Shown piece after piece: positions 39,600 to 60,626 of a DNA stretch of 64,000 nt; the stretch's first letter is position 1, and each line of letters starts with the position of its first letter. The notes beneath the pieces were generated by a model. The model did not search any database. It saw only the letters and a program-made list of their open reading frames with translations, and was not told the DNA's origin. Both the position numbers and the translations under genes were made by a program. Location: positions 151,809 through 215,808 of IMG/VR virus record IMGVR_UViG_3300046653_000093; one strand, written 5' to 3'.

Positions 39600-41401
39600 T
39601 ATTGTCCTTTTCTAGCCCTTTCCATTCTTTCTTTATACTCTCTTCCCCAAACGCCAAGCAGACCCCTAATCTTATCTTCCCACTTACCAAGAAAATCATG
39701 CTGCTTTTCAAGGGTTGATTGAAGTTCATTATACTTTTGCTCCAGCAATCTATCATCATGCTTACCGCGCTCTTTCCAATCATTAAACTGATTGATTGCA
39801 GTAGTGCTCCACTCATTATAGATGTCCCTCAATGAGTCCCTAACCGCCGCTGCCCATGGCCCAAAATTCGCATATTTTTCAGCATCATTAGTACCAGCTA
39901 CATTACTTAGAGCTATTTGTTCCCATCCACCAAATGACCAATCCTTAATATTTAGTTGTGGTAACAAACCTCCAATAGTCAAATCAGAAACAGATTTGCT
40001 TTGTCTGCTAGGAAAGTTCTGCATGATGATAAAATTACCAAGAGGTGGCCCTTGATTTGTTCTACCATAAGTATGTCCACTACTACCCTCACCTTCGCCC
40101 TCATCGCGTCGCTGATGAGCTTTACCAGTAGTTCCACCAGCTCCAGTGCCATGCAAAAGTTCCCTAATCATCTTCCTGGTTACAACTGGAACTTTTGGAT
40201 TACCACTAGCTTTGATAGCTTTTATTAGATCGTTCTTTATATCATTCCAAGCATTGGATATACTTTCCATTTGTTGGGCATAAAACTTACCAAGTTGAGC
40301 ATCATATTTATTTGCAATCTTACCTTTCCTATCTGGTCGTGGACTTGGCAAAGATCCTGGCTTTCCAGCGGTTCCATTCCACGCCCCATATAGTGCATCA
40401 AATTCTGCGTTTGCTCTTTGCAAAAACCATTTGATACTATCTTCAATAACACTCAGGCAGTGTGAATCAGAAGATTGAGCAGGGGCAACTGGAGCGGCCA
40501 CGACTGGAGCAGCGTCTTGTCCTAATCGGAAAATAGTTCTATCCAAAATCTCACTTGCCAATTTTCCGAAATAATCATCTAATGCCGCAGTAGCTGGAGC
40601 TTTAGCGGGAGCTAGTTTAGGAGCAGGCTGAGGTTCGGAATCTAATGGATTACAAGGGAAGTGAGGTTTCAGCCCACTCATAAAATCAAAGAAGCTTAGA
40701 AGATCTGCTAAATCTCCCATTGTTACTGGATGACGTCCCCAACCAACACCAAACGGATCTGATAAACCAGAATCTGGAAGAGATGGATCAATAACATCAA
40801 CAACAATCATTCCAGATCCCTCGGCAACAGATTCAACAGATGTTTGAATGCCAAGCGCACCGAATATTCTTGAGATGTTGTTTATGTTCTCACGAGCCTT
40901 CTCAATCAACTCTGCATCTTTCATTGATTGATATGGAATCGTACCAGTGCCTTCAGAAATTATTACGTCCTTGATGTTTAGCTGGGTCACCAAAGTCTTA
41001 ATTGCAACAAGTGCATCATGGGTATTCTTTCCCCATACACCATCGGCAGCTGCTGCACGCGATGAAGCCGACGATCCTGTTCTGGCAAAATGCACAGCCT
41101 GATCTGTAATGAGCTTAGCAGTCACCTTGGTATTTGGATCTTGTTGCTGTAAAGTGATAACAACTGATTGAGCAACATCTGGTTTACTTAGCTGAGTTCC
41201 TAAATCAACCATTAGGTTTTGCATTGTAGCAACTGTGCCATCAACATCTTTGTTGGTTGATTTAACGCCACCGGCAGGGGCTCCTCCACCACTAGGTGCG
41301 GCTCCGCCATGTCCACCAGGAATATGAGCCTTTCCTGTAACGCCACCACCGCCGACGCCAACCCAAGAGGCTACGTCCTGCCCAGCAAACTTAGAAGTCA
41401 T
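39599..41401 (-). CDS. Putative ejection protein with peptidoglycan-binding-like motif
   Basis: ADGVWGKNTHDAL (DGxxGxxT pattern of PG_binding_1 domains); 600 aa. Confidence 0.45.
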   Translation of the reverse strand: MTSKFAGQDVASWVGVGGGGVTGKAHIPGGHGGAAPSGGGAPAGGVKSTNKDVDGTVATMQNLMVDLGTQLSKPDVAQSVVITLQQQDPNTKVTAKLITDQAVHFARTGSSASSRAAAADGVWGKNTHDALVAIKTLVTQLNIKDVIISEGTGTIPYQSMKDAELIEKARENINNISRIFGALGIQTSVESVAEGSGMIVVDVIDPSLPDSGLSDPFGVGWGRHPVTMGDLADLLSFFDFMSGLKPHFPCNPLDSEPQPAPKLAPAKAPATAALDDYFGKLASEILDRTIFRLGQDAAPVVAAPVAPAQSSDSHCLSVIEDSIKWFLQRANAEFDALYGAWNGTAGKPGSLPSPRPDRKGKIANKYDAQLGKFYAQQMESISNAWNDIKNDLIKAIKASGNPKVPVVTRKMIRELLHGTGAGGTTGKAHQRRDEGEGEGSSGHTYGRTNQGPPLGNFIIMQNFPSRQSKSVSDLTIGGLLPQLNIKDWSFGGWEQIALSNVAGTNDAEKYANFGPWAAAVRDSLRDIYNEWSTTAINQFNDWKERGKHDDRLLEQKYNELQSTLEKQHDFLGKWEDKIRGLLGVWGREYKERMERARKGQ

Positions 41402-47038: not shown

Positions 47039-48061
47039 TTATGCTAAAAAACCTTTAGCCAACTCCTCTGCTAACTTCTGTAAAGATGTTTTCTTGCTCG
47101 CAACACTACGAGTCAATTCATCAAGATTAGGCTCTTCTGCCTCTGCATTGCCATCCTCTCCGATACCCTCAACCAATGATTCAATATCTGGATCATCAAG
47201 ATCAAGCTCACCTTCACTAGCACCTTCAGCTTCAGCAGGCTGATCAAGAATAGACCAATCACCTTCGCCCTCAGCAGGCTCTTCAAGTTCTTGCATCAAT
47301 TTCTCGAACTCTTTGTTGTCATCTGAATCTTCGGCCATACCCATATCGCCGCAATCAGCATCGCCGCAATCAATAACTTCGGAGGCATCATCGGACGCTT
47401 TTTTGGTAGTCTTCTTTTTGTCGTCCTTCTTGTCGTCTTTGCCCTTTGGCTTGGCCTTATCGTCTTTCTTGTCGTCCTTCTTCTTCAACCAAGGAGGTAG
47501 CCCTTTGGCATCATTCTTGTCGCCTTTTTTAGCATCTTCCTTTTTCTTGGCATCTTCCTTCTTTTTTTCGGCGGCCTTCTTCTCTTCTTCCTTCTTCTTG
47601 GCTGCGGCTTCTTCCTTCTTGTCTTTGCCCTTGCCTTTTTCTTCCTTCTTCTTGGCAGCGGTTTTTACAAGGTTATCAAGAGCTAACAATGTGAGAGCTG
47701 ATGCCTTAGAGAGTCCTGCCTCGTCCAAAATTTCGGAAGCGTTGCACAAACTCTTAATACAAGATTCGTACTTGGTCATAGCCTTCTTTTTTGCAGCTTT
47801 GGCCTTAGCCTTCTCTTTCTCGGCCTTCTCCTTTGCCTTCTCTTTTTCAGCTTTGGCCTTGGCCTTTTCCTTGTCAGCCTTTGCCTTCTCTTTTTCAGCT
47901 TCGGCCTTAGCCTTCGCCTTTTCTTTGGCAGCCTTTTCCTTATCGTCTTCTTTCTTTGCAGCCATCTTTGTGAATTGTGGTTCTGCCTTTGTGAAAATAG
48001 ACTGATATACTGGGCTGGCCATAATACCATTCATCTCTGTAGCAATATCAAATTTAGACAT
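47039..48061 (-). CDS. Lys/Ala/Glu-rich low-complexity protein (histone-like, putative DNA-condensing) with acidic tail
   Basis: KEKAKAKAE repeats, KKEDAKK, acidic C-terminus; start refined to MSKFDIA (GAGG RBS). Confidence 0.6.
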   Translation of the reverse strand: MSKFDIATEMNGIMASPVYQSIFTKAEPQFTKMAAKKEDDKEKAAKEKAKAKAEAEKEKAKADKEKAKAKAEKEKAKEKAEKEKAKAKAAKKKAMTKYESCIKSLCNASEILDEAGLSKASALTLLALDNLVKTAAKKKEEKGKGKDKKEEAAAKKKEEEKKAAEKKKEDAKKKEDAKKGDKNDAKGLPPWLKKKDDKKDDKAKPKGKDDKKDDKKKTTKKASDDASEVIDCGDADCGDMGMAEDSDDNKEFEKLMQELEEPAEGEGDWSILDQPAEAEGASEGELDLDDPDIESLVEGIGEDGNAEAEEPNLDELTRSVASKKTSLQKLAEELAKGFLA

Positions 48062-48079
48062 ATTTACCTCATTATGGAT

Positions 48080-48102
48080 GGGCGGGGCCTTCAACCCCGC
48101 CC
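48080..48102. promoter_or_regulatory. GC-rich intergenic stem-loop
   Basis: gggcgggg-ccttcaa-ccccgccc; no U-tract on the coding strand. Confidence 0.5.
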
Positions 48103-48113
48103 GGCCCAGAAAA

Positions 48114-51100
48114 TTAGAACTTCAAACCTTTTGACTCAAAGTAGTTATCAAAGAAACTCTTGATATCTTGCTCGCCTTCTTGTGCAACCTTGGCCATTGG
48201 TAGAATTACTTCGCCTGAACTTAGAAGACCAACCATAGGAATGGAAGCCTGCTTGTTCATAGATGGTTGTCGTGCCAAAATATTCTTGATGCTCTCAAAT
48301 CCCGCGTCATTCCACTTCATAATGTCGTTGACTTGTGAATCAAGCTGACCCTCAGTAATCATGCCTTTAGCAATCATTTGATGGGCAACTTCATAAGCTC
48401 TCTTGATACGTCCCTTGTAAGACTCAACTTCCTCAGCTTGCTTGGCTTTGGCATGTTCCTGTGTCAACTTGGTTGCGAAATCTTTACTTTCTGTATCGCC
48501 CTGACCAAACAGTTCCTTCCAATATTTAACTGCTTCCGCGTCAACACCATGGGAAACCAACTTATCAACATCATCAGCCTTCATCTTGCCTTCTGCAACT
48601 AGAGCCTGAATCATCTCAGCTTGCTTACGTACACGAGGTGGCATATTGGCCAACTCAAGCATGTAGCTTTGAATATCCTTTGGCACATGGAATTCAGCAC
48701 CTGGAACATTTGGCTTTACATCCAAGTTACCGGCGTCAACTGCACTAACACTGCCACCTGGATGCGCATCGTTAGACAATTCATTAAACCCAAGCAAGCC
48801 CTTTTCAGCTAGCTTTATACGTGCCTGGGCACGCCCTTCTTTAGTTGATAGTTCCAAAGTTCCTCCTGCTGTTACTGTTACCTCTCCTAGTTGCTGAGTT
48901 GTTCCATCTGGAGTCTTCAACGACAACTTGGCATCTGCCTTATCCGAAGCTCCCTTGCCCTTGATGTTAGCTAACCAGCTATCGAATGTACCTCCGTCTT
49001 CCGCCGCACCTTCATCAGCACATGGCAATTCACCAGTTGCTGCGTCTGCAGACTCTTCTTCAGCTCCATCCTTTGCATCGGCGCATTCTTCATCTTCTGC
49101 TCCGTCTTTTGCATCAGCGGCATCAGCACATTCCTCGGTTCCGTCAGCTGCATCTGCAGTCTCTTCGGTTTCTTCTTCCGAAGCGAAAATTGCGTCAAGA
49201 AGATCTTTTTCTGGATCTTTCTGTGAAGCGCGCTTCTCCAACTCAGCAGTTCCGTAAGCATACTTAACAACAGCCTCCATCAACTTACCAGCATCAACCA
49301 ACATGGCCTTTGCATCTTTGACTGCCGAAATTGTTAGTGCGTTCAGATATTCACGCTGCTCTTCGGTCATAGAAGCATAAGTTTCCTTATAGACCCTCTT
49401 TGCTGTGTTGATTTCACGCATGTGCTTCGCCAAAGAAGTAATCGTCTCATCGACGCCCTCTTGCAACATACCATTCACGCGCTTACGCATTGACTGAAGT
49501 TGAGACGCGGTCTTTGGCCCTTCCGAGAACTCTGCATCACCTGCAGGCTCAACGTCTGGCATAGCATCTGCATCTTCAGAAACAGCACCACTGACCTTGT
49601 CACGAAGATCACTAAGTTTGCCACCCATCTCATCAAACAAAGACTGAAGGTCATCGACGATTTCATCAGTATTCCCGCCCTTTCCGCCAACATTCTTTGG
49701 TGGCTCAAGTGGAGGAAGATCTGCGCCGCCTGCAGCACCATCGACTGGAGGAGCTGGAGGAGCAGCTGGAGCTGCTTGTGCGTTCTTTAATAGAGCGTCT
49801 GCTGTAGCCTGAAAGCCCTCGGTCTGAATGCGATTCAGCAATGACTTACCAAAACGCTCAGTAGCAACGGCGTCATAAAGAGACTCTGAATTACCCTTGG
49901 TAATTTGATCAACAGAGGCGCGAAGAATTGCTTTATCATTAGCATAAACGACCCAGCTCGAAGCTGACTTATTGACACGGCCATCAGGAAGAGCAACCTT
50001 CTCAAAACGAGCCTTCACCAACGAAGCACGAAGCAACTTCTCCTTCTCTTTCTCGTCGTCATCATAAAGACCTTCGACATCGCCAACGCCTGGGAATGGT
50101 TTTTCACCAACCATTTGCTTATCAAGCATACGGTCTTTCTCATTCAAAGGATCCTTTGAATATTGAACTTTACCTGGCTTTGGCTCTTCTGTGCCTAGGT
50201 AATATCCCTTGCTCTGCAGTTGTTCCTTTGCCTTCTTAAGAGCGGCTTCGCGGAACAATGCGCGCTCGTGCTCATCAGCTAAACGCTGAAGTTCTTTCTT
50301 TACCTTCTCGTCACCTGGGTACATACCCTCTTCGTCACCTGTGTTTGGGAAAGGAGCCGGACCATGTAAATTCTTGTCCATCAATCTCGCCTTCTCATTC
50401 AAAGGATCCTTTGAATATTGAGCCTGTCCCGGCTTTGGTTCTTCTGTACCTTGAAAATATGCATTCTTCTTTGTCATGGTTGGTTCCTCATTATTAGATA
50501 CTACTCTAAGTAAATTCTCCTGTAGGCTAGCCAGTTTCGTCTGCGCTCCCAAAATTGCTCTCTGTAACTCTGAGGCGTAAGTTGGGAAAGCCTCAGGCGG
50601 ATTTATCTGAGTCGATGGTTCTGCACCAGATTCTTCCATCGACCAGCTAGAGCGAGTTGGGCCAACCGCATCGCTCTCATCACTTTCATCAAAGTCATTG
50701 GCCATAGATTCGATCTTGCCCATCAGACTTTGAAGGTCTTTCTGAATAGATGTCAAATCTTGCCTAGACAAACCTTTCTTTACTTCCAAATAATCTGAAA
50801 GTAACCCGGCAGCCTTAGCAATATCACTGGCAATAATATGCTTAACCTTGGCTTTTGGGTCTGCTCCGGAAACAACTAATGACAGTTCAATCGGAGTCAA
50901 ATCTAGGTTGATTTCACCGTAGCAGCTCTTGTTCTTCATATGTTGGCAGAAATCTTTTTCAGTTCTGGCGACTCTGTGGCAGTCGGAACATACAGCTCGC
51001 CCTACGGCTGTACCCATCGAAACATTGTTGGCAACCCCTGTCTTAACCTTATCGGCCAAGTCACCATAATTTTTCGCATCAAGAGCACAAAGAGCAATTA

Positions 51101-51575
51101 CTCTCTTTCTACGGTCATCATATACGGTGTCAACAATAACGCCTCGAATCTTATCAACCGACTGTGATTGATGATCGAGGCATAATGGACGACCGACCCA
51201 ATTTTTATATGCTACTTTCAACTCTGCTTCTGGAAAGATGTCTCGGTTATTATTCCGATAAGGCATAAGGGTTTTTTCATTACAAACCCACTTTACACCG
51301 CCTTCCTTAGTAGATTCCCAAGCAGCTTCGACATCTTTTCCTTGTGATGTCTTCTTTGGGGTTCCATCATCATTAATGCAAGCTGCCTCAGCGGCATGCA
51401 TCATCACGCAAGTAAAATATAAGAAGTCTTTTGCTTTTGGAGCGATAACCTTCAACTCTTGAGCAAACTTGTACATGCGGTTTTCAATATCCAAATCCAT
51501 ATCATCTGCCAATTTCTCAATTGGCTTGATATCCTCTGGTCTGATGAAAACCGATTCTCCTAGTTTAATAAGCAT
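48114..51575 (-). CDS. Prohead protease fused to long scaffold/internal region
   Basis: N-terminal protease-like block NNNRDIF..GRPLCLDH..RGVIVD..VSMGT..CSDC..CQHM..IELSLVVSGADPKA, followed by coiled-coil, acidic and repeat regions; 1153 aa. Confidence 0.75.
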   Translation of the reverse strand: MLIKLGESVFIRPEDIKPIEKLADDMDLDIENRMYKFAQELKVIAPKAKDFLYFTCVMMHAAEAACINDDGTPKKTSQGKDVEAAWESTKEGGVKWVCNEKTLMPYRNNNRDIFPEAELKVAYKNWVGRPLCLDHQSQSVDKIRGVIVDTVYDDRRKRVIALCALDAKNYGDLADKVKTGVANNVSMGTAVGRAVCSDCHRVARTEKDFCQHMKNKSCYGEINLDLTPIELSLVVSGADPKAKVKHIIASDIAKAAGLLSDYLEVKKGLSRQDLTSIQKDLQSLMGKIESMANDFDESDESDAVGPTRSSWSMEESGAEPSTQINPPEAFPTYASELQRAILGAQTKLASLQENLLRVVSNNEEPTMTKKNAYFQGTEEPKPGQAQYSKDPLNEKARLMDKNLHGPAPFPNTGDEEGMYPGDEKVKKELQRLADEHERALFREAALKKAKEQLQSKGYYLGTEEPKPGKVQYSKDPLNEKDRMLDKQMVGEKPFPGVGDVEGLYDDDEKEKEKLLRASLVKARFEKVALPDGRVNKSASSWVVYANDKAILRASVDQITKGNSESLYDAVATERFGKSLLNRIQTEGFQATADALLKNAQAAPAAPPAPPVDGAAGGADLPPLEPPKNVGGKGGNTDEIVDDLQSLFDEMGGKLSDLRDKVSGAVSEDADAMPDVEPAGDAEFSEGPKTASQLQSMRKRVNGMLQEGVDETITSLAKHMREINTAKRVYKETYASMTEEQREYLNALTISAVKDAKAMLVDAGKLMEAVVKYAYGTAELEKRASQKDPEKDLLDAIFASEEETEETADAADGTEECADAADAKDGAEDEECADAKDGAEEESADAATGELPCADEGAAEDGGTFDSWLANIKGKGASDKADAKLSLKTPDGTTQQLGEVTVTAGGTLELSTKEGRAQARIKLAEKGLLGFNELSNDAHPGGSVSAVDAGNLDVKPNVPGAEFHVPKDIQSYMLELANMPPRVRKQAEMIQALVAEGKMKADDVDKLVSHGVDAEAVKYWKELFGQGDTESKDFATKLTQEHAKAKQAEEVESYKGRIKRAYEVAHQMIAKGMITEGQLDSQVNDIMKWNDAGFESIKNILARQPSMNKQASIPMVGLLSSGEVILPMAKVAQEGEQDIKSFFDNYFESKGLKF

Positions 51576-51742
51576 TAGCTCTCCATTGAATTTTTATCTT
51601 TAACTCCAGACTCTTTTGCAGAAATGCGTTCTTGCGCTTTCTCTAAGGCTGTAGCTAAAGCAGATTTGCGTTCGGTATCATCCTCAATTTCGTAAGGATC
51701 AACAACGCTAATAATTTCTGCATCGCCAGTTTTTACTAACAT
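51575..51742 (-). CDS. Small hypothetical protein (55 aa; not in ORF track)
   Basis: MLVKTGDAEIISVVDPYEIEDDTERKSALATALEKAQERISAKESGVKDKNSMES; GGAG RBS; TAATG coupling to the protease gene. Confidence 0.65.
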   Translation of the reverse strand: MLVKTGDAEIISVVDPYEIEDDTERKSALATALEKAQERISAKESGVKDKNSMES

Positions 51743-51754
51743 ACCAATCTCCAA

Positions 51755-52378
51755 TTAGCTCTCTTGCAAAGCTTTCTGCCTTTCCTTGAAGAGCTGAACG
51801 ACCAACGGGACTCGTTCCTCAATGGGCTCACTATCACCGTCCGAAATATCCTTTGCCCAATTCTTTGCCAAAATATTACTGTCTATGTGCTCCAAAATAC
51901 GATCTCTAATCAACTGCTCAATTTGATTCATCTGCTTCTTGAGCGAGTCAATCGTCGAAATCAAGTGATCTCGGAACTCGGAACTATTAAGATTCGAGAA
52001 TATTGACACAAAAGTATCAACATATTTATCTAATTCTCTAATAGCTCCAATAAATGATTCCATTATCTCTTCGGTAGCGGTATCCGTGCTGAAAGAATTC
52101 ATCAAGGCCACACACTTATAAGCCTTCTTTACTATTTTCCTGAACTTCAATTTCACCTGGTCACGGTATTCCCTGAAAGTTTTTCTGTAATCTGTAACCA
52201 TCTCCATATCAATATTTTGATGCTTCTGGAATGGAACATAGATTAGATCAAGATAATCTTTTGTATCTTGTAACCCCGAGATAAGCTGCTCAAAATATTC
52301 CTCTGCCTTTTCCGCAACCCTCTTTTCAGATTCCGGAACACCAAAATGCATTTGAATAGAGTAAGCTTTTCGATACAT
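51755..52378 (-). CDS. Hypothetical helical protein
   Basis: 207-aa ORF in operon orientation. Confidence 0.55.
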   Translation of the reverse strand: MYRKAYSIQMHFGVPESEKRVAEKAEEYFEQLISGLQDTKDYLDLIYVPFQKHQNIDMEMVTDYRKTFREYRDQVKLKFRKIVKKAYKCVALMNSFSTDTATEEIMESFIGAIRELDKYVDTFVSIFSNLNSSEFRDHLISTIDSLKKQMNQIEQLIRDRILEHIDSNILAKNWAKDISDGDSEPIEERVPLVVQLFKERQKALQES

Positions 52379-52410: not shown

Positions 52411-53493
52411 TTATACCTGTCCAGGTCCCGAATATGGCAGCTGAACAATGCCAGCCGCGCCATCCGGCATTCCACCTACTCCGGCTCCACTTCCTGGATA
52501 TACAAATGTATAATCTGTAGAATTATCCCTAAGACCAACTTCAACAACATCACCAATTCCGGCAACATCATTTACATCATCTTCTTCTTGTATATCTACT
52601 AAAACATCAGGGTCAATTACCAAATATTGATTATATCTGAGAATAGCCACATCAATATCTTTGGTAAGAATATCATGTATTAAAGTATCTGTAATAGGTT
52701 TATCAAATTTCTCAAAAATAGCTGATGAATCTAGATTGGCAGAAAACATTTTACCAGAAGAGTCTTTTTGTTTTTTATTAGCCGCCTCCATTGAGGTGCA
52801 CCAATAATTGCCTGGTTTGAGCAAATCTGAAGCCTTACATCTAATGTAAATGCGAACATATGCATTCTTATTCAAGGAAGCTATTTTCGCAATTCTACTA
52901 AGCTGACTGAACTCTATATCTGTGCCAGGCGGCAGATTGAAATTAACCGGCCTCGTAATAGTCATGTCATTAACAGCCGGATTTTGCGGAGAGAATGAAT
53001 TCGTCTCCCGTGTCAGAGACACCGCATCGATAGCATTGCTTTTATCGTCTTCCAATTCATTAGCAAATTGCTTGACGGCATCATAATAGCTTCGCGTAAC
53101 CTTTGGAGGTAGGTATGCACCCATTCCGAATTCAGCTGCCTCTTTGAGAGCTTTCTCAACTGGCCATCCTGTGTAGATACGATACATCGCCACACTCATT
53201 CCAGTTCGATCCTTGCCATGAAGGCAATGAATGTATGTAGGCCCATCATGCGTGAGGGTTGGAATGATTCTTTTCTTTAAGGCGGCTACCTTTGGATCGC
53301 TTCCATCGCCCAAGCCCCAAATAATATGCTTGAGCCCAAGCTCTTCACAAATCGAATCTATATTGTGTCCACACTCATCATCCAAACTAACAATCTTATT
53401 TATTCCCAATCCCTTGAGAAAAATCAAATCATGAGCAGACGGACATCCTCCTCTGTATAAATTCTTGGATACTTGTGAAAATCTAGCTGGCAT
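52411..53493 (-). CDS. Cys-dependent protein-tyrosine/dual-specificity phosphatase-like protein with extra C-terminal domain
   Basis: NLYRGGCP, GINKIVSL, YIHCLHGKDRTG (HCx5R P-loop); start refined to MPARF. Confidence 0.85.
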   Translation of the reverse strand: MPARFSQVSKNLYRGGCPSAHDLIFLKGLGINKIVSLDDECGHNIDSICEELGLKHIIWGLGDGSDPKVAALKKRIIPTLTHDGPTYIHCLHGKDRTGMSVAMYRIYTGWPVEKALKEAAEFGMGAYLPPKVTRSYYDAVKQFANELEDDKSNAIDAVSLTRETNSFSPQNPAVNDMTITRPVNFNLPPGTDIEFSQLSRIAKIASLNKNAYVRIYIRCKASDLLKPGNYWCTSMEAANKKQKDSSGKMFSANLDSSAIFEKFDKPITDTLIHDILTKDIDVAILRYNQYLVIDPDVLVDIQEEDDVNDVAGIGDVVEVGLRDNSTDYTFVYPGSGAGVGGMPDGAAGIVQLPYSGPGQV

Positions 53494-53791
53494 CTTCATC
53501 CTTGAAATCAATTGCTTTTATAGCAACCATCAAGGCAATTTCAGCCGGCTCATCTACATCCTCATTTAAAGCTCTATCAAATGCTACCTTAAATGCCTTT
53601 TGAAACTTCAATCGCCGATCATCATCGCCTTTTCGTAGCTTTCTCATTACATAACTATAGCTCAGATCTGCCCTTGGATTTTCTGTATCAGTTATCGCAG
53701 CATAAGCAAAAAGAGCATCCTTCGTTAGCTCGGACTCGCCAAGCAACCTCAAATCTTTGCAAATGGATGCTAATTCACTGGCTATGCTCAT
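53483..53791 (-). CDS. Hypothetical protein
   Basis: 102 aa ORF. Confidence 0.55.
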   Translation of the reverse strand: MSIASELASICKDLRLLGESELTKDALFAYAAITDTENPRADLSYSYVMRKLRKGDDDRRLKFQKAFKVAFDRALNEDVDEPAEIALMVAIKAIDFKDEDAS

Positions 53792-53793
53792 TA

Positions 53794-54216
53794 TTAAATT
53801 CCCTTACTCTTAATCTTCTTCACCCTACCTTTGAAGCAATTCATAACATCAACTCCATCTAATGGAGACACCAAATAAACATTGTAGGAATTGAATAATA
53901 TAACTGTCTTGAATTTCCTAATAGGTGTTTCTACTTCGCATTCTATGGCGAAAACCTCGCCTCTTCCCCAAAGAACTTTACCTTCAACAAATAGATTGTT
54001 GGATATCTCGAAATCAGCATAATTGGTAGTTCCGCCAGATTCTCCCCAGTAAACCTGAATAGTTTTACCTTTGTAGAAATGGCCAACTGCCTCTGCTAAA
54101 GAAGTGATGTGTGAATATTTAGCTTCATCAGATTCATAAACATTTTCTGCGGCATAGATATTTGAACCATCTTCCGCAATATTGATTATGTCATTTTTGT
54201 TGTTTTCATCACTCAT
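53794..54216 (-). CDS. Hypothetical protein
   Basis: GGAG RBS before MSDENN. Confidence 0.55.
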   Translation of the reverse strand: MSDENNKNDIINIAEDGSNIYAAENVYESDEAKYSHITSLAEAVGHFYKGKTIQVYWGESGGTTNYADFEISNNLFVEGKVLWGRGEVFAIECEVETPIRKFKTVILFNSYNVYLVSPLDGVDVMNCFKGRVKKIKSKGI

Positions 54217-55568
54217 CTTATTCTCCAACAATCAAAGGCAACCTTCCTAAAACTTTTGTCTAGAACTTCAGATTCAATTACCTCTAGTTCCGAAATGCCG
54301 GGAACAACCTCAACGTCAATTCCCATTTTAGTGAGATTCAAAAACTCATCAGCTAGATACTTAGATATGCCAAAAATTGCAGGTAGGGAAGCCATCTTGC
54401 TTCCATAAACTTCCACTTGCACTTCTATATCATCATCTTGGTGTCTTACCGAGCACGTAGCATCAATTTCTTGCCTCAACGCACTGGCTAATACTCGCGC
54501 AAATTGAGCTTTGTAATCAAAAGTTTGCCCATTGACTTTGATCAATGCCTGGGTTTTGGGCAGTGCCTTTTTTAGTAGAGCTCTTTTGACAATTCTTGTA
54601 ATTGGTCCATCAGACGCAACTGTTGGCTCTGGCTCTGCTGGTACTGGTTTTGGCTCCACAATAGGCTCAGACGGAGGTTTGTAATTTTTGAGACTATTCG
54701 ATGGATCAGTAGAGAGCCAAACTCCTAACATAGATAATTGATCCCTTTTAGGAATTCTAGTGCCTAAATCTGTTAGGATAACCTTATCAATAGGAATTAG
54801 AATCTCATTAGTCCCTGTAGGAAATGCTACAGGCGGCAAATGCAATTCAACTCTCATTTCATTCGAATATCTATTTTTTACCTGTTCAGAAACTGGAGAG
54901 AAGTTCACCACTTCCAACATTGAATCATTTAGGATGGAAAACTTAAGGTTCTCCAAAAATTGATTATAGTATGGAGCCATATAATCAAGCATACTGGCAT
55001 CAAACAAACGCCCTAGATTTCGCCATATAGTTTCTTTGACATTGGTACTTATAGAAATGTTTTCTGGGCCATATTTTCGATACCAAGAAAACATAGATAT
55101 TGGTTGGTTGATTCGCCTGCCAATTGGAACTTCAGACCTAAACTCTTCTGGTAACTGTTCCCATAGCTTCTGAACTAAGGTCTTATCTTTATGATAATCC
55201 TTCGCTACCCAACGAAGATTCTTGCCAGCTAAGGTATTTCCGCCTTTACCAACATATTCCTCTTGATGTTCCAACATTGCATCTCGAAGCGTCTCAATTT
55301 TTCTGACACTATCAGAAAGCAAAGATGGAAGTACTTCAGAAGTAATACGGTCAACAGCTTCAGCATCCTGACTTCTAACAGCCTCATCTAATCTCTTGAA
55401 TGTTCGTTCAACTGGTTCTCTAAGGGCTTTGAGTGCTTTTCTGTTTTTTCGAGTAGCAAACCAATCCTTAACTTTTTGAACGACTCCAGCAATTTTAACT
55501 AGATCTCCAGTATTCGCCTGTAGCTCTAAAGCTGCATATCGCAATATCTGAAGATCTTCGTTCTCCAT
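54213..55568 (-). CDS. Hypothetical head-region protein
   Basis: 451 aa; multiple K-x-A motifs. Confidence 0.55.
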   Translation of the reverse strand: MENEDLQILRYAALELQANTGDLVKIAGVVQKVKDWFATRKNRKALKALREPVERTFKRLDEAVRSQDAEAVDRITSEVLPSLLSDSVRKIETLRDAMLEHQEEYVGKGGNTLAGKNLRWVAKDYHKDKTLVQKLWEQLPEEFRSEVPIGRRINQPISMFSWYRKYGPENISISTNVKETIWRNLGRLFDASMLDYMAPYYNQFLENLKFSILNDSMLEVVNFSPVSEQVKNRYSNEMRVELHLPPVAFPTGTNEILIPIDKVILTDLGTRIPKRDQLSMLGVWLSTDPSNSLKNYKPPSEPIVEPKPVPAEPEPTVASDGPITRIVKRALLKKALPKTQALIKVNGQTFDYKAQFARVLASALRQEIDATCSVRHQDDDIEVQVEVYGSKMASLPAIFGISKYLADEFLNLTKMGIDVEVVPGISELEVIESEVLDKSFRKVAFDCWRIR

Positions 55569-56776
55569 TATTTGACTTCCTTTCCATCGACCATAACTTT
55601 TGGAGTGCCAACGTACCGGAGGTACTGTTCTGGATTTTTGTATCCACGATTAAATGCTTCAGCAACTCTCTCTTTTGAAAAGCGAGGAAGATCTTGTACT
55701 ACATCATAAATACAAACATCTATGGCTTGCCCTCTAATACGGTCCAAATCAACAGCTGTTTTCAGCAAACTAATGCTGCGCTGCTCATCACCAAGCTGAT
55801 CACAGAGCTCAGATGCTTGGGCCAATAGAGCAGTGCCAATACCAACATGACCATTCAATATCGCTGTCCTGGCATTAGCGATCATATCATTTACATCCTT
55901 GGCTGCTTTCTGACTTGGAGGATTACCAGAAAGGATTGGTCCCGCTGATGGCACTGGTGGCGGTGTAGGTGGCACCGGTGAAGTTGGAGCAGCTGCTGGC
56001 GGGGTTATTTGAGGCTGAGATACTTCGGCAGGTTTAGCAGGCTCAGCTGGAAAGTTGGCTATATACATACGCTTCAGATGCTCTTTTTCATTACCTAGCT
56101 TCTTTTGATATTCTCTAGCAAGTCGCACATACTCCATGATATTTCTACGATTGTCATCCAATACAGCAAATGCCTGATCGATTAGAGCGTATGTGCTTTC
56201 AGCAATGGCCATTGCTTCTCGCGCCGCATTTTGTTGCTTGCCTTGTATATTTTTGAAAATCTTATCGAAAAGAACTCCCTCTAATTCTTTTTTGGTAGGT
56301 ATTTTTTCCTGAAGCCATTGGGTAACGCCAGCTTCAATAATCAATTCTGGGTCTGGTGAAGCTGCTACTCGTGGAACTTTTCGAACACCAAGCTGTTCTT
56401 CAAGCTGTTGTCTCTCAAAATCATCCATCGTATTTTGAGAAAACTCAGAATATATTTCACTACCGATAGTATCCAACTCATCTATCTGATCAATGAAAAC
56501 GCCATTAACAGAATCTAAAATAGAATTGGCATATTGGAAAACTCTTAAGAAATCACGATTCTTCATTGCCATTCGAGCTTGATGTAACTGATCGCGCAAG
56601 CTAGGCTTCAATCTCGTAATATTATCACGCATCGCCTTATCAACGGCATCTACAGCTGCAATTAACCTGCGATATTTGCTGGAGGACATCTGCCGAATCC
56701 ATTCCATTGGATTTAGGGATCTCCCAAGCATCTTAGTTACAGATCTCTTTTGAGCTTCTTTTTCAAAGTTATTCAT
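55568..56776 (-). CDS. Hypothetical head-region protein
   Basis: Follows portal; Pro-rich linker; KEA and KTA motifs. Confidence 0.55.
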   Translation of the reverse strand: MNNFEKEAQKRSVTKMLGRSLNPMEWIRQMSSSKYRRLIAAVDAVDKAMRDNITRLKPSLRDQLHQARMAMKNRDFLRVFQYANSILDSVNGVFIDQIDELDTIGSEIYSEFSQNTMDDFERQQLEEQLGVRKVPRVAASPDPELIIEAGVTQWLQEKIPTKKELEGVLFDKIFKNIQGKQQNAAREAMAIAESTYALIDQAFAVLDDNRRNIMEYVRLAREYQKKLGNEKEHLKRMYIANFPAEPAKPAEVSQPQITPPAAAPTSPVPPTPPPVPSAGPILSGNPPSQKAAKDVNDMIANARTAILNGHVGIGTALLAQASELCDQLGDEQRSISLLKTAVDLDRIRGQAIDVCIYDVVQDLPRFSKERVAEAFNRGYKNPEQYLRYVGTPKVMVDGKEVK

Positions 56777-56817
56777 GTAGCGCTCCAACTATAAGAAGCC
56801 AAAATATGCGCTGTGTG

Positions 56818-58728
56818 TTATCCTGGAGGAGCTGGTGGTTTCGGTGCTCCACCGCCGCCTCCGCCAATCGGAGATGGTGGTGGTGATCCAGACATTGGAC
56901 CAGGTCCGGGAGGTGCTCCTAATCCCCCACCTAATCCACCTGGTGCCGCTCCTCCACCTGGTGGAGTTATGAATGGACTTTCTCCTGGTACTGGTTGATC
57001 AATCTGAGTCACCTCATCAATCTCATCGCCAGGTCCAAGAGCCCTTAGCTCATGAAGATCATATTGTGCTAGAGAGGCTAGTTCTTTGATTCGAATTGCA
57101 TCTTGAATATCTTCGTAGCGAATCTTTCTCTGCTCTTCTTCGTATTCAAGACCAAGGCTTCTATATAGCGTTTGCAATGAAGCGCGCTTAGCCACACCTT
57201 CGCCGGTTGTAAGCTGAACCATCTGATTGATGTAACTATCCATATCAAACAATGACATGTGATTCCAATCAATCTCTGGAACAATAAGAGTCTTCTCTCC
57301 GTCAATTAGGTCATAAAAGTCCTGGATTTGTGCAATTGGAGCGAAGATTTTTCTCTTCAACCAACTAGACATCATTTGACGGAATTGCATGTATCTCTGT
57401 CGCAACACATCCAAAGCAACAGATCCTGTTGCATAAGTGGTATCACTGCCATCCATAATAACCGATGGAACCATCAAGCCAATATAGATCTCTTTGATAA
57501 GCTGAGTCACGTCAGCCGAAGTATCATAAATACCCTGGCCATATCCAATACGATCAACGGTTACGGCATCATGGGTGAAAATCTTGAAGTCCCTATCGTA
57601 TTGAGCTTGCTCGAATACGTGTCTCCAGTTCTCAAGATCAACTGGGCTTGGACGGAATTCCTGGTTTCCAATCTTAACCAATGTCAATGGATTGACCATG
57701 TTATCTGCTTGTGCATACTTAGATTCGCGCAATTTGTCCCACAACATAAGAGCTCGGAAACACGAAACAATAAGGCCCGTTCCACGAATTTCGTATGGGG
57801 AAATTCTTCTAGCCATATGATGCACATAGAAGTTGTTTAGGGGGATTTGCTCATTCTTTCGTACATGCTCAATGATCGAAGGGTCCAGCTGCTTGCGCTG
57901 TTGTAGATCTGATGGTTGATTACCAAAAACTACTCGTCTAAGATTCTCATCTGGGCGCATACTAATGATTGGCTCTGCCGCAATTACGCTACGCTGTACG
58001 TTGACATAATCCGGATTGAGAATCATCAGGCGGCTCCAACTTCCCTTGCTCTCGTCTAACTCGCAATAAGTAAAGGCCTCACCAAGAATCCAAAATTCTT
58101 GGGCTGCCATACAGGCAATATTCATTAGATCAATTTCCTCCGACATTTGGGAGAAGAACTTCTCTACCTTCGGATTCTTTGATTTGATATTCAACTTAGC
58201 AATTGGATAAGTTGAGTGTAATGTAATTGCATTATGAACAATTGGATTCAATGCAAAAAAGCTGCGGCTCCAAGCATTGATAGTTGGACGGTCTCTTGGT
58301 AAGTTGAGGTTCGAGTTCAACCATAGAGGAGAGTAGACTTCGGGAACTTGCCTTACAGAATCGTTAGAGCCACGCCAGCCCCCACCAGCAGAAGAGGCAA
58401 CATTGCCGACCCCACTGGCCATTTTATACATACCCTTGCCATTGTGAGTAACTACACCTAAACTAGTTTGAGCATTCCGAACTTCGCTGCGGCCACTCCT
58501 AGAAGATGAGAAACCAGACCCTTGCTCTCTCAGCTCTCCAGCATCAATCTGCATTTCCATAATATCTCGGCGTTGATCACTAACGCCACGAGCCATTCGA
58601 TTGGAAACCTCAGGAATACTAGAGAGAGCTATATTTTTGGCCATTAAGCTTTCAGAACGAGAAGCTATCTTAGCATTCCTTTCAATAAGGTCTTGCGCAC
58701 GTGTTTTGGTATTATTAATATCCATCAT
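56818..58728 (-). CDS. Portal protein
   Basis: Follows terminase; NPIVHNAITLH, EFWILGEAF, ILNPDYV, PYEIRGTGLIVSCFRAL, IYIGLMVP; Gly/Pro-rich tail. Confidence 0.8.
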   Translation of the reverse strand: MMDINNTKTRAQDLIERNAKIASRSESLMAKNIALSSIPEVSNRMARGVSDQRRDIMEMQIDAGELREQGSGFSSSRSGRSEVRNAQTSLGVVTHNGKGMYKMASGVGNVASSAGGGWRGSNDSVRQVPEVYSPLWLNSNLNLPRDRPTINAWSRSFFALNPIVHNAITLHSTYPIAKLNIKSKNPKVEKFFSQMSEEIDLMNIACMAAQEFWILGEAFTYCELDESKGSWSRLMILNPDYVNVQRSVIAAEPIISMRPDENLRRVVFGNQPSDLQQRKQLDPSIIEHVRKNEQIPLNNFYVHHMARRISPYEIRGTGLIVSCFRALMLWDKLRESKYAQADNMVNPLTLVKIGNQEFRPSPVDLENWRHVFEQAQYDRDFKIFTHDAVTVDRIGYGQGIYDTSADVTQLIKEIYIGLMVPSVIMDGSDTTYATGSVALDVLRQRYMQFRQMMSSWLKRKIFAPIAQIQDFYDLIDGEKTLIVPEIDWNHMSLFDMDSYINQMVQLTTGEGVAKRASLQTLYRSLGLEYEEEQRKIRYEDIQDAIRIKELASLAQYDLHELRALGPGDEIDEVTQIDQPVPGESPFITPPGGGAAPGGLGGGLGAPPGPGPMSGSPPPSPIGGGGGGAPKPPAPPG

Positions 58729-58757: not shown

Positions 58758-60626
58758 TTATCCACGGCCACCAAACATCTTAGGAATATACCCAACAACT
58801 GCCTGGATTGGACGTGCGCTTGTAGCTAGTTCGTATTTCATATATTGTGGATTGCTAATCGTGAATCCCTGGGTTACATCGAATTTCCAAGCCAAATAGG
58901 CATTCAATAGCGCCATCAAACCGTCGTTAGCTACAGACCCTTTTACATACTTTTTTAAAGGCTCCCCTGACTTATCCCTAGTAACTTTAATCTCCATACT
59001 TGCGCAATGTTCGATTAGCCATTCGATTCGGTCTAAGCTCCCACCTGGAAACTTGATACGGCCTTCTTTCAAAAGCCCAAGCAACTCTGAAATATAATAG
59101 TCTTTTTCGAATACAACTGTCTTTGGCCACTCATCATTTGAATATTTTATGCGTCCATTTACCTTATGCGAAGAACGAGATGCCAAAAACTTCTCATCAT
59201 AAATTAGTTGCAATTTATGTGTCAAGTCATATGCATCACCAATGTCGCCGATGGATAATGTCATATTGTAGCGCCTAAACATTTCCTCAACTGTATTCAT
59301 CTTCGTCTCTGGATCTGGTCTAAGCAACCGAGTGGCAAATTCAACATTGAATACATTTCCAGAGGCAGTTAAAATAACAGCACAACTATAGGAACCTTTA
59401 CGTCCTCGCCCAGACATCTGTTCAAGCGCTCCTCTCTGGCCCCAGTCGAATCCTGCATAAACTCGACGACCTTCATCAGGATAAATATACTTGACCATCT
59501 TGCGACCCTTATCGATGCACTTATCGCGAATCTCTTGGGACGTAATTGTTCCGCCTTCGCCGTCGTAGAATTCACCAAGAACTTCGTTCATGTAAACGCG
59601 CTCGGTATTAATTGGACTACGCTCTGGCTTTGCTTTCTCTATGGTCTCTTTGGTAAAATTTGGAATGTATAATTGATTGATGTGATAGCCAACAAAATCA
59701 CACTTCTCAGGATCGTTGATTGGAATCCATCGGCCACGTTCCTGAGCTTCAAGCTTATCTTGTTCGCAATGACACTCAGTACATCGAACAATCAAGCCAT
59801 AGAGCCATACCTCTTCCCAGTTCACACCAGGATGATATAGAGGAAAATATTTTCCACATCTTTCACAGCGCAAATGAAAGTAATTCTGTGAAGAATTCTG
59901 CCACATATTCCAATAAGATCCGCCTTTGGTCTTGGGCGTTCCATAATATACTTGAACACCTTCACCAGCCATTCCGTATCTGGATTGCGCTAGAATCTTT
60001 GTAGCTGCACCGATAGCAGCGTCGGACATGTCTTGTACCTCATCAAAGAAAGTACCATCACAAGTACGACCACGAATTCTATCGCCGTCGATACCGGTCG
60101 ATTCAATCCAAATCTGATTTCCAAACATGAATTTTTTGAAATGCATGTTGTTATTAGTCGGACTAGACAAATCCAAACGCGCTTCCATGTATGACTTCAG
60201 AATGCCATTGCTCTTCATCATTCCTGGAACTGGAGCCGCGTGACCAATGATTGGATCAAGTTTATCTTTTGTATACGCTGCCGCTAAAGATAACGTCGGG
60301 AACAAATGCATCATGCGCATTGGTGGACGTTCGTTAGTACCAAACAATCCACAGGCACTGAAGTAACACTCAAGAGCTGCCGCCATCGTCGTCGCCCCCA
60401 CCTGCCGTCCTTTCACAAGAACAATGGGTTTTGAGTTTGGCTCAATAGCTTTGAGTGCTATGTATCTGTAAATGTCGGCGAATGGCTTATAGCCAGTACC
60501 TTCTAATTGTAACGGCTTACCATCAACAGTTAAATATTTTGCACAAAAATATACCGGATCAAGACTTAGAATTCCGTCACGAAGTTTATAAAATAACTCA
60601 TTAAATCCTATTTCTGCAGATTTCAT
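58758..60626 (-). CDS. Terminase large subunit (lambda GpA-like with Zn finger)
   Basis: Walker A VLVKGRQVGATT, RIRG, Walker B FFDEVQD, YGTPK, CERC/CTEC, nuclease AGFDWG. Confidence 0.9.
   Translation of the reverse strand: MKSAEIGFNELFYKLRDGILSLDPVYFCAKYLTVDGKPLQLEGTGYKPFADIYRYIALKAIEPNSKPIVLVKGRQVGATTMAAALECYFSACGLFGTNERPPMRMMHLFPTLSLAAAYTKDKLDPIIGHAAPVPGMMKSNGILKSYMEARLDLSSPTNNNMHFKKFMFGNQIWIESTGIDGDRIRGRTCDGTFFDEVQDMSDAAIGAATKILAQSRYGMAGEGVQVYYGTPKTKGGSYWNMWQNSSQNYFHLRCERCGKYFPLYHPGVNWEEVWLYGLIVRCTECHCEQDKLEAQERGRWIPINDPEKCDFVGYHINQLYIPNFTKETIEKAKPERSPINTERVYMNEVLGEFYDGEGGTITSQEIRDKCIDKGRKMVKYIYPDEGRRVYAGFDWGQRGALEQMSGRGRKGSYSCAVILTASGNVFNVEFATRLLRPDPETKMNTVEEMFRRYNMTLSIGDIGDAYDLTHKLQLIYDEKFLASRSSHKVNGRIKYSNDEWPKTVVFEKDYYISELLGLLKEGRIKFPGGSLDRIEWLIEHCASMEIKVTRDKSGEPLKKYVKGSVANDGLMALLNAYLAWKFDVTQGFTISNPQYMKYELATSARPIQAVVGYIPKMFGGRG

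Follow-up and report, generated by a model that had tools for sequence, protein, structure and literature searches.

Introduction

Effectors that are packed into the phage capsid and injected decide the first minutes of infection. Apart from T4 Alt and the internal proteins (IPs) of T4, the Dar proteins of P1 and the virion RNA polymerase (vRNAP) of N4, few of them have been characterised. Head-associated ADP-ribosyltransferases (ARTs) and polyvalent proteins are already known. For example, InPase has been reported only from phage-type polyvalent proteins that are thought to be packaged (PMC5512222). The domain cRec has been described only in contexts of NAD+ or cyclic-phosphate processing (PMC7824862), and phosphatases of the protein tyrosine phosphatase (PTP) superfamily are recurrently coupled to the processing of ADP-ribose (ADPr) (PMC9503650). 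In this study, we analysed an open reading frame (ORF) at positions 52411-53493, minus strand, of a 64,000-nucleotide stretch (the window) of IMG/VR virus record IMGVR_UViG_3300046653_000093. The window is the final 64 kb of this linear record of 215,808 bp, whose completeness according to CheckV is approximately 50%. Three features are new: the architecture of a PTP domain with an ART-fold domain, an orphan family of compact ART-fold domains in which the triad is degenerate, and a Gly-rich tail that stays constant in a clade of giant phages. The parts of the protein are as follows:

52411..53493, minus strand: whole ORF, 360 aa plus stop (P0001), with PTP domain, linker, ART-fold domain and Gly-rich tail
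53044..53493, minus strand: residues 1-150, Cys phosphatase of the PTP superfamily, Y_phosphatase2 / PFA-DSP / TpbA-like (Pfam, AlphaFold2 (AF2), Foldseek, phmmer)
53200..53229, minus strand: P-loop HCLHGKDRTG, residues 89-98, with predicted nucleophile C90 and R96 (sequence, homologue conservation)
52861..53043, minus strand: residues 151-211, predicted-disordered linker with conserved motifs (predicted local distance difference test (pLDDT) below 50, homologue alignment)
52579..52860, minus strand: residues 212-305, minimal ART-fold domain of a new sequence family
52414..52578, minus strand: residues 306-360, acidic motif IQEEDDVND (52567-52593), then Gly-rich C-terminal tail ending in LPYSGPGQV

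The reading that we favour, for which we find belief and doubt about evenly balanced, is that the protein is a modular capsid-internal effector injected with the DNA, in which a phosphatase payload would act on a substrate of the NAD/ADPr or nucleotide type and the ART-fold domain would be non-catalytic.

The phosphatase domain

The original prediction of a PTP-like phosphatase with an intact P-loop was confirmed by three kinds of search. The Pfam family Y_phosphatase2 (PF03162) matched residues 2-123 with an E-value of 2.8e-14 and 53.5 bits, well above the cut-off of 27 bits, and other families of the DSP-PTPase group (Tc-R-P, Y_phosphatase3, PTP-NADK and PTP-SAK) matched more weakly. The AF2 model of the domain, which has the alpha-beta fold of the PTP/DSP type, reached a pLDDT above 90 over residues 10-150. 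When it was compared with the PDB by Foldseek, the matches were AtPFA-DSP1 (7mom, E 1.7e-8), TpbA (4r0s) and Siw14 (6byf), with TMt values of 0.66-0.75, and by phmmer the closest solved relatives were TpbA of Pseudomonas aeruginosa (6e-10) and AtPFA-DSP1 (approximately 1e-6).

The P-loop has the C-X5-R(S/T) form of the superfamily. In the phmmer alignment, C90 falls opposite C132, which is the catalytic Cys of TpbA. H89, C90, H92, G93, K94, D95, R96 and T97 were invariant among 34 aligned homologues. In a larger set of 61 homologues, C90, G93, R96 and T97 were still invariant, while H92, K94, D95 and D66 were at least 90% conserved, and D66 pairs with an Asp of TpbA in the phmmer sequence alignment. 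PFA-DSPs are reported to operate without a classical general acid. Because the fold, the Pfam match and the conserved P-loop are all intact, the phosphatase domain looks catalytically competent. In cultured-phage records, nucleotide and protein searches gave nothing beyond a PTP of 31% identity in Acinetobacter phage MD-2021a.

The substrate cannot be read from the sequence of this domain. The chief alternative to a nucleotide-type substrate is a protein, which is what TpbA acts on. According to this explanation, which we consider unlikely but deserving of serious attention, the protein would be an injected TpbA-like phosphatase of phosphotyrosine (pTyr), phosphoserine or phosphothreonine, acting on phosphoproteins of the host or its defences (such as defence kinases, a BY-kinase or signalling targets), and the ART-fold domain and tail would only be an anchor in the capsid or ejection apparatus, with no nucleotide ligand. 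TpbA, a protein phosphatase, is indeed the best sequence match with a solved structure, but the best Pfam family is of the PFA-DSP/Siw14 type, which acts on phosphoanhydrides.

The ART-fold domain

The second domain had been thought to resemble ADP-ribosyltransferase-like domains loosely. Of this claim the fold has stood, because fold searches return almost only the ART superfamily, whereas the sequence family and the catalytic positions have not. In the full-length AF2 model, the domain had a pLDDT of approximately 80 and lay between the low-confidence linker (152-211) and tail (306-360). When it was modelled alone from a 61-sequence alignment, the pLDDT was 83.7 and the predicted template modelling score (pTM) was 0.73. 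These models indicate that the second domain folds as a genuine unit of its own, and the predicted structure has the split beta-sheet of the ART fold. Among the 50 rows listed in the fold search, nearly all belonged to the ART superfamily, including a domain from the pre-ejectosome protein of cyanophage A4 (6.7), diphtheria-type toxins, PARPs, Tpt1, Arr and Rhs ART toxins, and the pseudo-PARPs PARP13 and TASOR were also among the matches. The Foldseek comparison with the PDB gave weak E-values (best 7.5e-3), yet the list was purely ART. Similarly, the matches in BFVD were phage proteins with ART-PolyVal and PARP-catalytic domains, those in the ESM Atlas were RES (TM 0.72), ART-PolyVal (TM 0.68) and DUF3990, and the language-model neighbours were ART families, with scores that serve as leads only.

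Sequence comparison gave a different picture. Sequence-profile searches of residues 152-360 and 205-312 against Pfam, NCBIfam and the PDB found no match even at E<=10. RES (PF08808) had no Pfam match at E<=10, and the search of the genome for this family was negative. When a RES profile was compared with the domain profile by hhalign, the probability was 0.4%, though LFSA was aligned to IYSS; the RES set was of low diversity, as it was built from the pSymA RES genes and homologues at least 75% identical, which weakens the comparison. ART-PolyVal (PF18760) likewise had no Pfam match, and the genome search for it was negative, but its controls gave no signal either; the conserved His in strand 1 that marks ART-PolyVal is absent from the domain. 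An exhaustive search with a hidden Markov model (HMM) through 1.84 billion representative proteins found only 48 clusters (50% identity) that hold the ART-fold domain. A tblastn match in a Serratia phage MyoSmar protein (E approximately 3) was rejected as chance, as this protein is a member of the Pam3_Gp34 family.

Two small stand-alone proteins, P0114 (99 aa; E 8e-5) and P0116 (107 aa; E 8e-4), are distant relatives of the domain. They keep 'LYR' in strand 1 and 'EEFVV/DEYVV' in strand 5, which are hallmark positions of active ARTs, and by sequence they may be active mini-ARTs that link the orphan family to canonical ARTs. The catalytic triad was mapped to residues 217, 250 and 289 through sequence alignment to these two proteins, not through residue-level superposition. 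Among 112 members, position 217 was C, I or R (46%, 21% and 13%), position 250 was F or Y (55% and 41%), and position 289 was Q in 39% and variable in the others. The residues conserved in the same members were W231 (97%), D281 (96%), A252 (93%), P295 (93%) and S251 (88%). Of the canonical triad (H/R in strand 1, Y/S in strand 2 and E/D/Q/N in strand 5), only F/Y250 and S251 are thus retained.

Studies have shown that the active site of ART-PolyVal is H-Y-D (PMC5512222) and that RES has R-Y-N, along with arginines that are essential (PMC9503650, PMC6436930). The domain follows neither pattern. On these alignments, the domain represents a new compact ART-fold sequence family in which the Arg/His of strand 1 and the Glu of strand 5 appear to have been lost. 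Because the H-Y-D and R-Y-N patterns are absent and the triad positions are variable, canonical ADP-ribosyl transfer by the domain is unlikely. We believe that 'ART-like fold' is the right description and that 'ADP-ribosyltransferase' is doubtful; what the domain has in common with bacterial ART toxins is the fold only.

These results bear on the protein-phosphatase explanation. The unconserved triad, the ART-like domain that forms a structural part of the cyanophage A4 pre-ejectosome and the pseudo-PARPs PARP13 and TASOR all speak for a domain that only anchors, while S251 and D281 are polar and highly conserved, which suggests a ligand site instead.

They also bear on a two-step NAD+-directed enzyme, in which a RES-like NAD+ phosphorylase or NADase would yield ADP-ribose-1''-phosphate or a related product from which the PTP would remove the phosphate, or in which the pair would degrade phosphorylated ADPr-derived immune signals. 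Such a scheme is attractive given the chemistry of MbcT (PMC6436930). However, the essential R27 and R47 of MbcT have no conserved counterpart, the profile and Pfam comparisons with RES were as poor as described above, and no support was obtained for a contact between the PTP and ART-fold domains, so that we regard it as distinctly improbable. The complex prediction for the two domains scored 0.00, which is no answer and counts as evidence neither way.

The linker and the C-terminal tail

The protein had been described as a two-domain polyprotein. Its modularity was borne out by the disordered linker and by relatives that lack one domain or the other, whereas a cleavage site and a protease specificity were not found. 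The linker carries DAVSLTR at 53008-53028, in which D156 and R162 are invariant, and PP..DIEFS.LSR.A, and these motifs survive in variants without the PTP domain. The RIA, KIA and KNA motifs pointed out in the original prediction are present at aa 200-211 (52861-52896), but they are not a feature of the whole family: KIASLNKNAY is an insertion confined to the closest relatives, and only the LSR-x-A motif is widely conserved. A role of RIA/KIA/KNA as a conserved cleavage cluster was therefore ruled out. An I-x-E cleavage motif (I301-x-E303), considered by analogy with T4 gp21, was dropped as too common to count. When the N-terminal region of the neighbouring head protease was compared with PDB sequences, no match was found that would tell the protease type or the cleavage rule.

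The tail is predicted to be disordered (pLDDT approximately 30) and is strongly conserved among homologues. It is the most constant element of the family, ends in LP[YF][ST]G.GQV, and is retained in variants without the PTP domain or without the ART-fold domain. In the partial genome, no paralogues or shared motifs of the tail, linker or ART-fold domain were found. When the tail by itself was used in a word search of the database, over proteins of 198-630 aa, no family other than that of the target came back. Within this length range, the idea that one tail is common to several cargo types was thus unsupported.

Homologues and domain architectures

A word-based search found 76 homologues with 35-92% identity on contigs of up to 463 kb. 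The recurrent gene order was the terminase large subunit (TerL), portal, two large ORFs, two ORFs of approximately 100 aa, the target gene, an ORF of approximately 207 aa, an ORF of approximately 55 aa and the protease/scaffold gene. A contig of 446 kb, the homologue that diverges most (35% identity) and all architectural variants showed this order.

Among 117 proteins tallied, 100 had both domains, 12 had only the ART-fold domain and 4 had only the PTP domain, some of the short ones possibly being fragments. Domains were also gained: P0051-53 carry cREC, PTP and the ART fold; P0083 carries two PTP domains and the ART fold; P0108 (1182 aa) carries PTP and, further on, InPase with the ART fold; and P0113 is a form of 643 aa. 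Forms without PTP that keep the linker motifs, ART fold and tail are P0079, P0093, P0095 and P0102, of which P0095 and P0102 were confirmed in their contigs. In P0079, PTP is deleted, and the counterpart of the 102-aa ORF that precedes the target continues in frame into the linker, ART-fold domain and tail. P0068 and P0077 have PTP and the tail without the ART-fold domain.

For the explanation by an injected protein phosphatase, the persistence of the ART-fold domain and tail at the locus without PTP is a favourable point. Against it, some forms keep the tail without the ART-fold domain, so this domain is not an indispensable anchor, and the cREC and InPase of relatives are tied to nucleotide or cyclic-phosphate chemistry and not to substrates that are proteins (PMC7824862, PMC5512222).

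The nearest TerL of an isolate is only approximately 25% identical, and therefore the clade is one of uncultivated giant phages, with relatives on contigs of 446-463 kb. The 463-kb contig that holds one close homologue, P0010, bears the NCBI label 'Candidatus Pacearchaeota archaeon'. Because the whole family sits in the context of a phage head module, the contig probably comes from a giant phage and was mis-binned.

The head genes around the target

The location in a head module had been predicted, and TerL, portal and protease/scaffold genes do surround the target, in a synteny that is conserved down to 35% identity. The neighbouring genes are as follows:

58758..60626, minus strand: TerL, 622 aa (phrog_675, 2.5e-55; Pfam GpA_ATPase)
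56818..58728, minus strand: portal protein (phrog_16240, 1.3e-46)
53483..56788, minus strand: four ORFs (406, 451, 145 and 102 aa) between portal and target, syntenic in relatives, without family match
51575..52378, minus strand: conserved downstream ORFs of 207 aa and 59 aa (synteny)
48114..51575, minus strand: 1153-aa head maturation protease fused to a scaffold-like region (phrog_18299, 1.4e-15 on aa 116-216)
47039..48094, minus strand: 351-aa ORF after the protease/scaffold gene, putative major capsid protein (position only, no family match)

Downstream of the target, slots of 203-210 aa and 48-66 aa were found in every relative examined. The start codon of the target overlaps the end of the upstream 102-aa ORF by 11 nt (53483-53493). 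Tiling ORFs of at least 90 aa lie on the minus strand throughout the window (1-64000), and GC skew is negative throughout (cumulative -3.6), which fits one long co-directional late (structural) transcription block.

The large ORF between portal and target carries an SLT match above the cut-off in one relative (26.1 bits; L011 2998-5790), and in another (L013 2863-5043) the syntenic large ORF has a weak glucosaminidase match below the cut-off. The syntenic large ORFs of the window itself (55568-56788 and 54213-55568) gave no peptidoglycan-hydrolase match. The presence of peptidoglycan-hydrolase domains in the syntenic ORF of relatives suggests that the whole block from portal to protease encodes ejected internal proteins.

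The position of the gene bears on whether the protein is packaged at all. It could instead be a late cytoplasmic enzyme or assembly factor in the head operon, which would, for example, dephosphorylate head or scaffold proteins ('phospho-DGY') or serve late metabolism. In its favour, only gene position speaks for packaging, and the protein has no known capsid-targeting domain and a tail unique to its family. Nevertheless, we consider this improbable. The slot between portal and protease/scaffold is strictly conserved down to 35% identity, giant genomes included, syntenic neighbours encode peptidoglycan-hydrolase domains of a kind that ejected proteins typically have, the conserved disordered terminal motifs would be typical of incorporation signals, and the InPase-bearing form resembles a polyvalent protein (PMC5512222).

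The protease/scaffold protein has two copies of a repeat of approximately 65 aa (Y.[QL]GTEEPKPG..QYSKDPLNEK...), which start near 50450 and 50195, at a spacing of approximately 85 residues. It also has a repeat region rich in Asp, Glu and Ala (ADA[AK]DGAE) near 49082-49118. Its Tyr-bearing repeats may be the source of the 'DGY' idea in the original prediction. In relatives (the 446-kb ENA contig, L001 7677-12194 and L011 1-428), inteins or homing-endonuclease domains occur in head genes: TerL carries LAGLIDADG or Intein_splicing, and the protease/scaffold gene carries Hom_end_hint and Intein_splicing. The TerL and protease/scaffold genes of the window showed no intein or homing-endonuclease domain.

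Start codon and motif positions

The stop codon of the target ORF is at 52411-52413. The automatic ORF call runs on to a TTG start at 53511. We preferred the ATG at 53493, because MPARF is where the homologues begin and because this ATG follows, at a distance of 5 nt, an AAGGA sequence that resembles a Shine-Dalgarno site. The coordinates 52411-53493 are upheld on the same grounds. No alternative genetic code had to be assumed. All motif strings quoted in the original prediction were found in the ORF at their expected places, with PGNYWCTSMEAAN at aa 227-239, GKMFSANL at aa 247-254, KDIDVAI at aa 278-284 and QYLVIDPDVL at aa 289-298.

Discussion

In the mechanism that we consider most likely, the protein would be made late and become part of the prohead interior, for which the tail and the linker motifs may be responsible. 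It would leave the capsid with the DNA and, as T4 Alt, MuF fusions and polyvalent proteins do, act as soon as infection starts, in its first minutes. Its catalytic payload would be the phosphatase, which would probably strip a terminal phosphate from a nucleotide-type small molecule (for example one derived from NAD+/ADP-ribose or bearing a phosphoanhydride) and not from a classical pTyr protein. As for the ART-fold domain, recognition of a ligand resembling NAD or ADP-ribose, or of a partner, would be more likely than transfer of ADP-ribose.

In T4, the slot between the portal and protease/scaffold genes encodes prohead core proteins. The target lies in the head-gene cluster, between portal and protease/scaffold, as is expected of a packaged effector. 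We infer capsid-internal delivery from the conserved slot, the hydrolase domains in its neighbours, the shuffling of domains on a constant tail and the InPase of a relative. We lean towards a nucleotide, NAD or ADPr substrate because of the cRec fusions, the coupling of PTP phosphatases to ADPr processing and the NAD+-binding fold of the partner domain.

Several points weigh against this reading. The argument for packaging is one of gene position, the tail is unique to the family and so provides no general capsid-targeting label in the partial genome or the database, and searches of the target with Pfam and PHROG found no MuF, portal, DarA-N or MPTase domain. TpbA, the closest solved PTP relative by sequence, is a protein Tyr/Ser/Thr phosphatase. 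The link to NAD/ADPr consists of the fold, the cREC and InPase fusions of relatives and a PTP-NADK similarity that is below the cut-off in the target (17.6 bits; 33-36 bits in relatives). As for the non-catalytic role of the ART-fold domain, the triad mapping relies on sequence alignment to borderline homologues (E 8e-5 and 8e-4), and the canonical Glu is dispensable for activity in RES enzymes (PMC6436930), which leaves room for catalysis by the domain.

A further scheme joins both domains to the tail. The tail would be a capsid-loading or ejection signal, and a RES-like ART-fold domain with a new active-site arrangement (W231, S251 and D281) would form with PTP a pre-packed coupled unit against NAD+/ADPr immunity. 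In it, the ART-fold domain, as the founder of a new enzyme family of this fold, would cleave or capture molecules derived from NAD+ or ADP-ribose, and PTP would remove the phosphate, for example from ADPr-1''-phosphate or from phosphorylated ADPr signals. We hold this scheme to be very doubtful.

The same record also encodes, outside the window, a Macro-domain protein (24.7 bits, just above the cut-off) and two NUDIX proteins, all of them kinds of protein that process ADP-ribose or nucleotides. Searches of this half-genome for cREC, NAPRTase, RES and ART-PolyVal gave no match. The genes are at the following positions of G000:C1:

72082-72420, minus strand: Macro-domain protein
40739-41017, plus strand: NUDIX protein
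9504-9866, plus strand: NUDIX protein

If the reading of an injected phosphatase effector is true, a cysteine phosphatase would join the set of packaged effectors, in uncultivated phages of approximately 0.4 Mb, and the family could reveal if phosphatases have a role where phages and bacteria fight over NAD+/ADP-ribose. A compact ART-fold family that is invisible to sequence methods is now defined. The domains PTP, cREC, InPase and ART fold come and go on a constant tail, which offers a natural system for the addressing of cargo to the phage head. If the ART-fold domain is only a structural pseudo-enzyme, the result is a useful but ordinary annotation.

Comparison with known systems

The phosphatase domain shares with the PFA-DSP / Siw14 / TpbA branch the fold, a CX5R P-loop with the GK pair and RTG, and a size of approximately 150 aa. 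In contrast to the solved members, to which it is only 21-24% identical, it is encoded in a phage head module and fused to an ART-fold domain and a Gly-rich tail. PFA-DSPs act on inositol pyrophosphates and TpbA on periplasmic TpbB, whereas the substrate of the target would be a putative one in the bacterial cytoplasm.

RES toxins (MbcT, P. putida RES and NatT) and ParT are minimal ART-fold toxins that use NAD+, and they have no sequence-profile relation to the target. Their essential Arg is unconserved in the target domain, which is approximately 50 residues shorter. The target also has no Xre or ParS antitoxin as a neighbour, as it belongs to a head module and not to a toxin-antitoxin pair. 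In the pre-ejectosome of cyanophage A4, residues 1418-1610 of one protein (PDB 9k3a chain B) have moderate similarity to the ART-fold domain; however, they are part of a podophage protein of more than 1600 residues, and its published description does not name the domain ART.

Polyvalent proteins, ART-PolyVal and MuF fusions (PMC5512222) resemble the target family in that several unrelated enzyme-type domains stand in one polypeptide of a virion gene cluster. They also share the domain vocabulary seen in the relatives (ART fold, InPase and phosphoesterases), flexible linkers and a predicted delivery with the DNA. The target differs in being much smaller (360 aa, two domains), in having no MuF, portal, MPTase or LPD domain, and in having neither a PF18760 match nor the H-Y-D triad of ART-PolyVal. 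T4 Alt, a head-packaged ADP-ribosyltransferase, is similarly an ART-fold protein of the head-gene region for which injection is proposed. Alt has the active R-S-E triad of a working enzyme and is processed at an N-terminal site, whereas in the target the triad is degenerate and the probable catalytic partner is a phosphatase.

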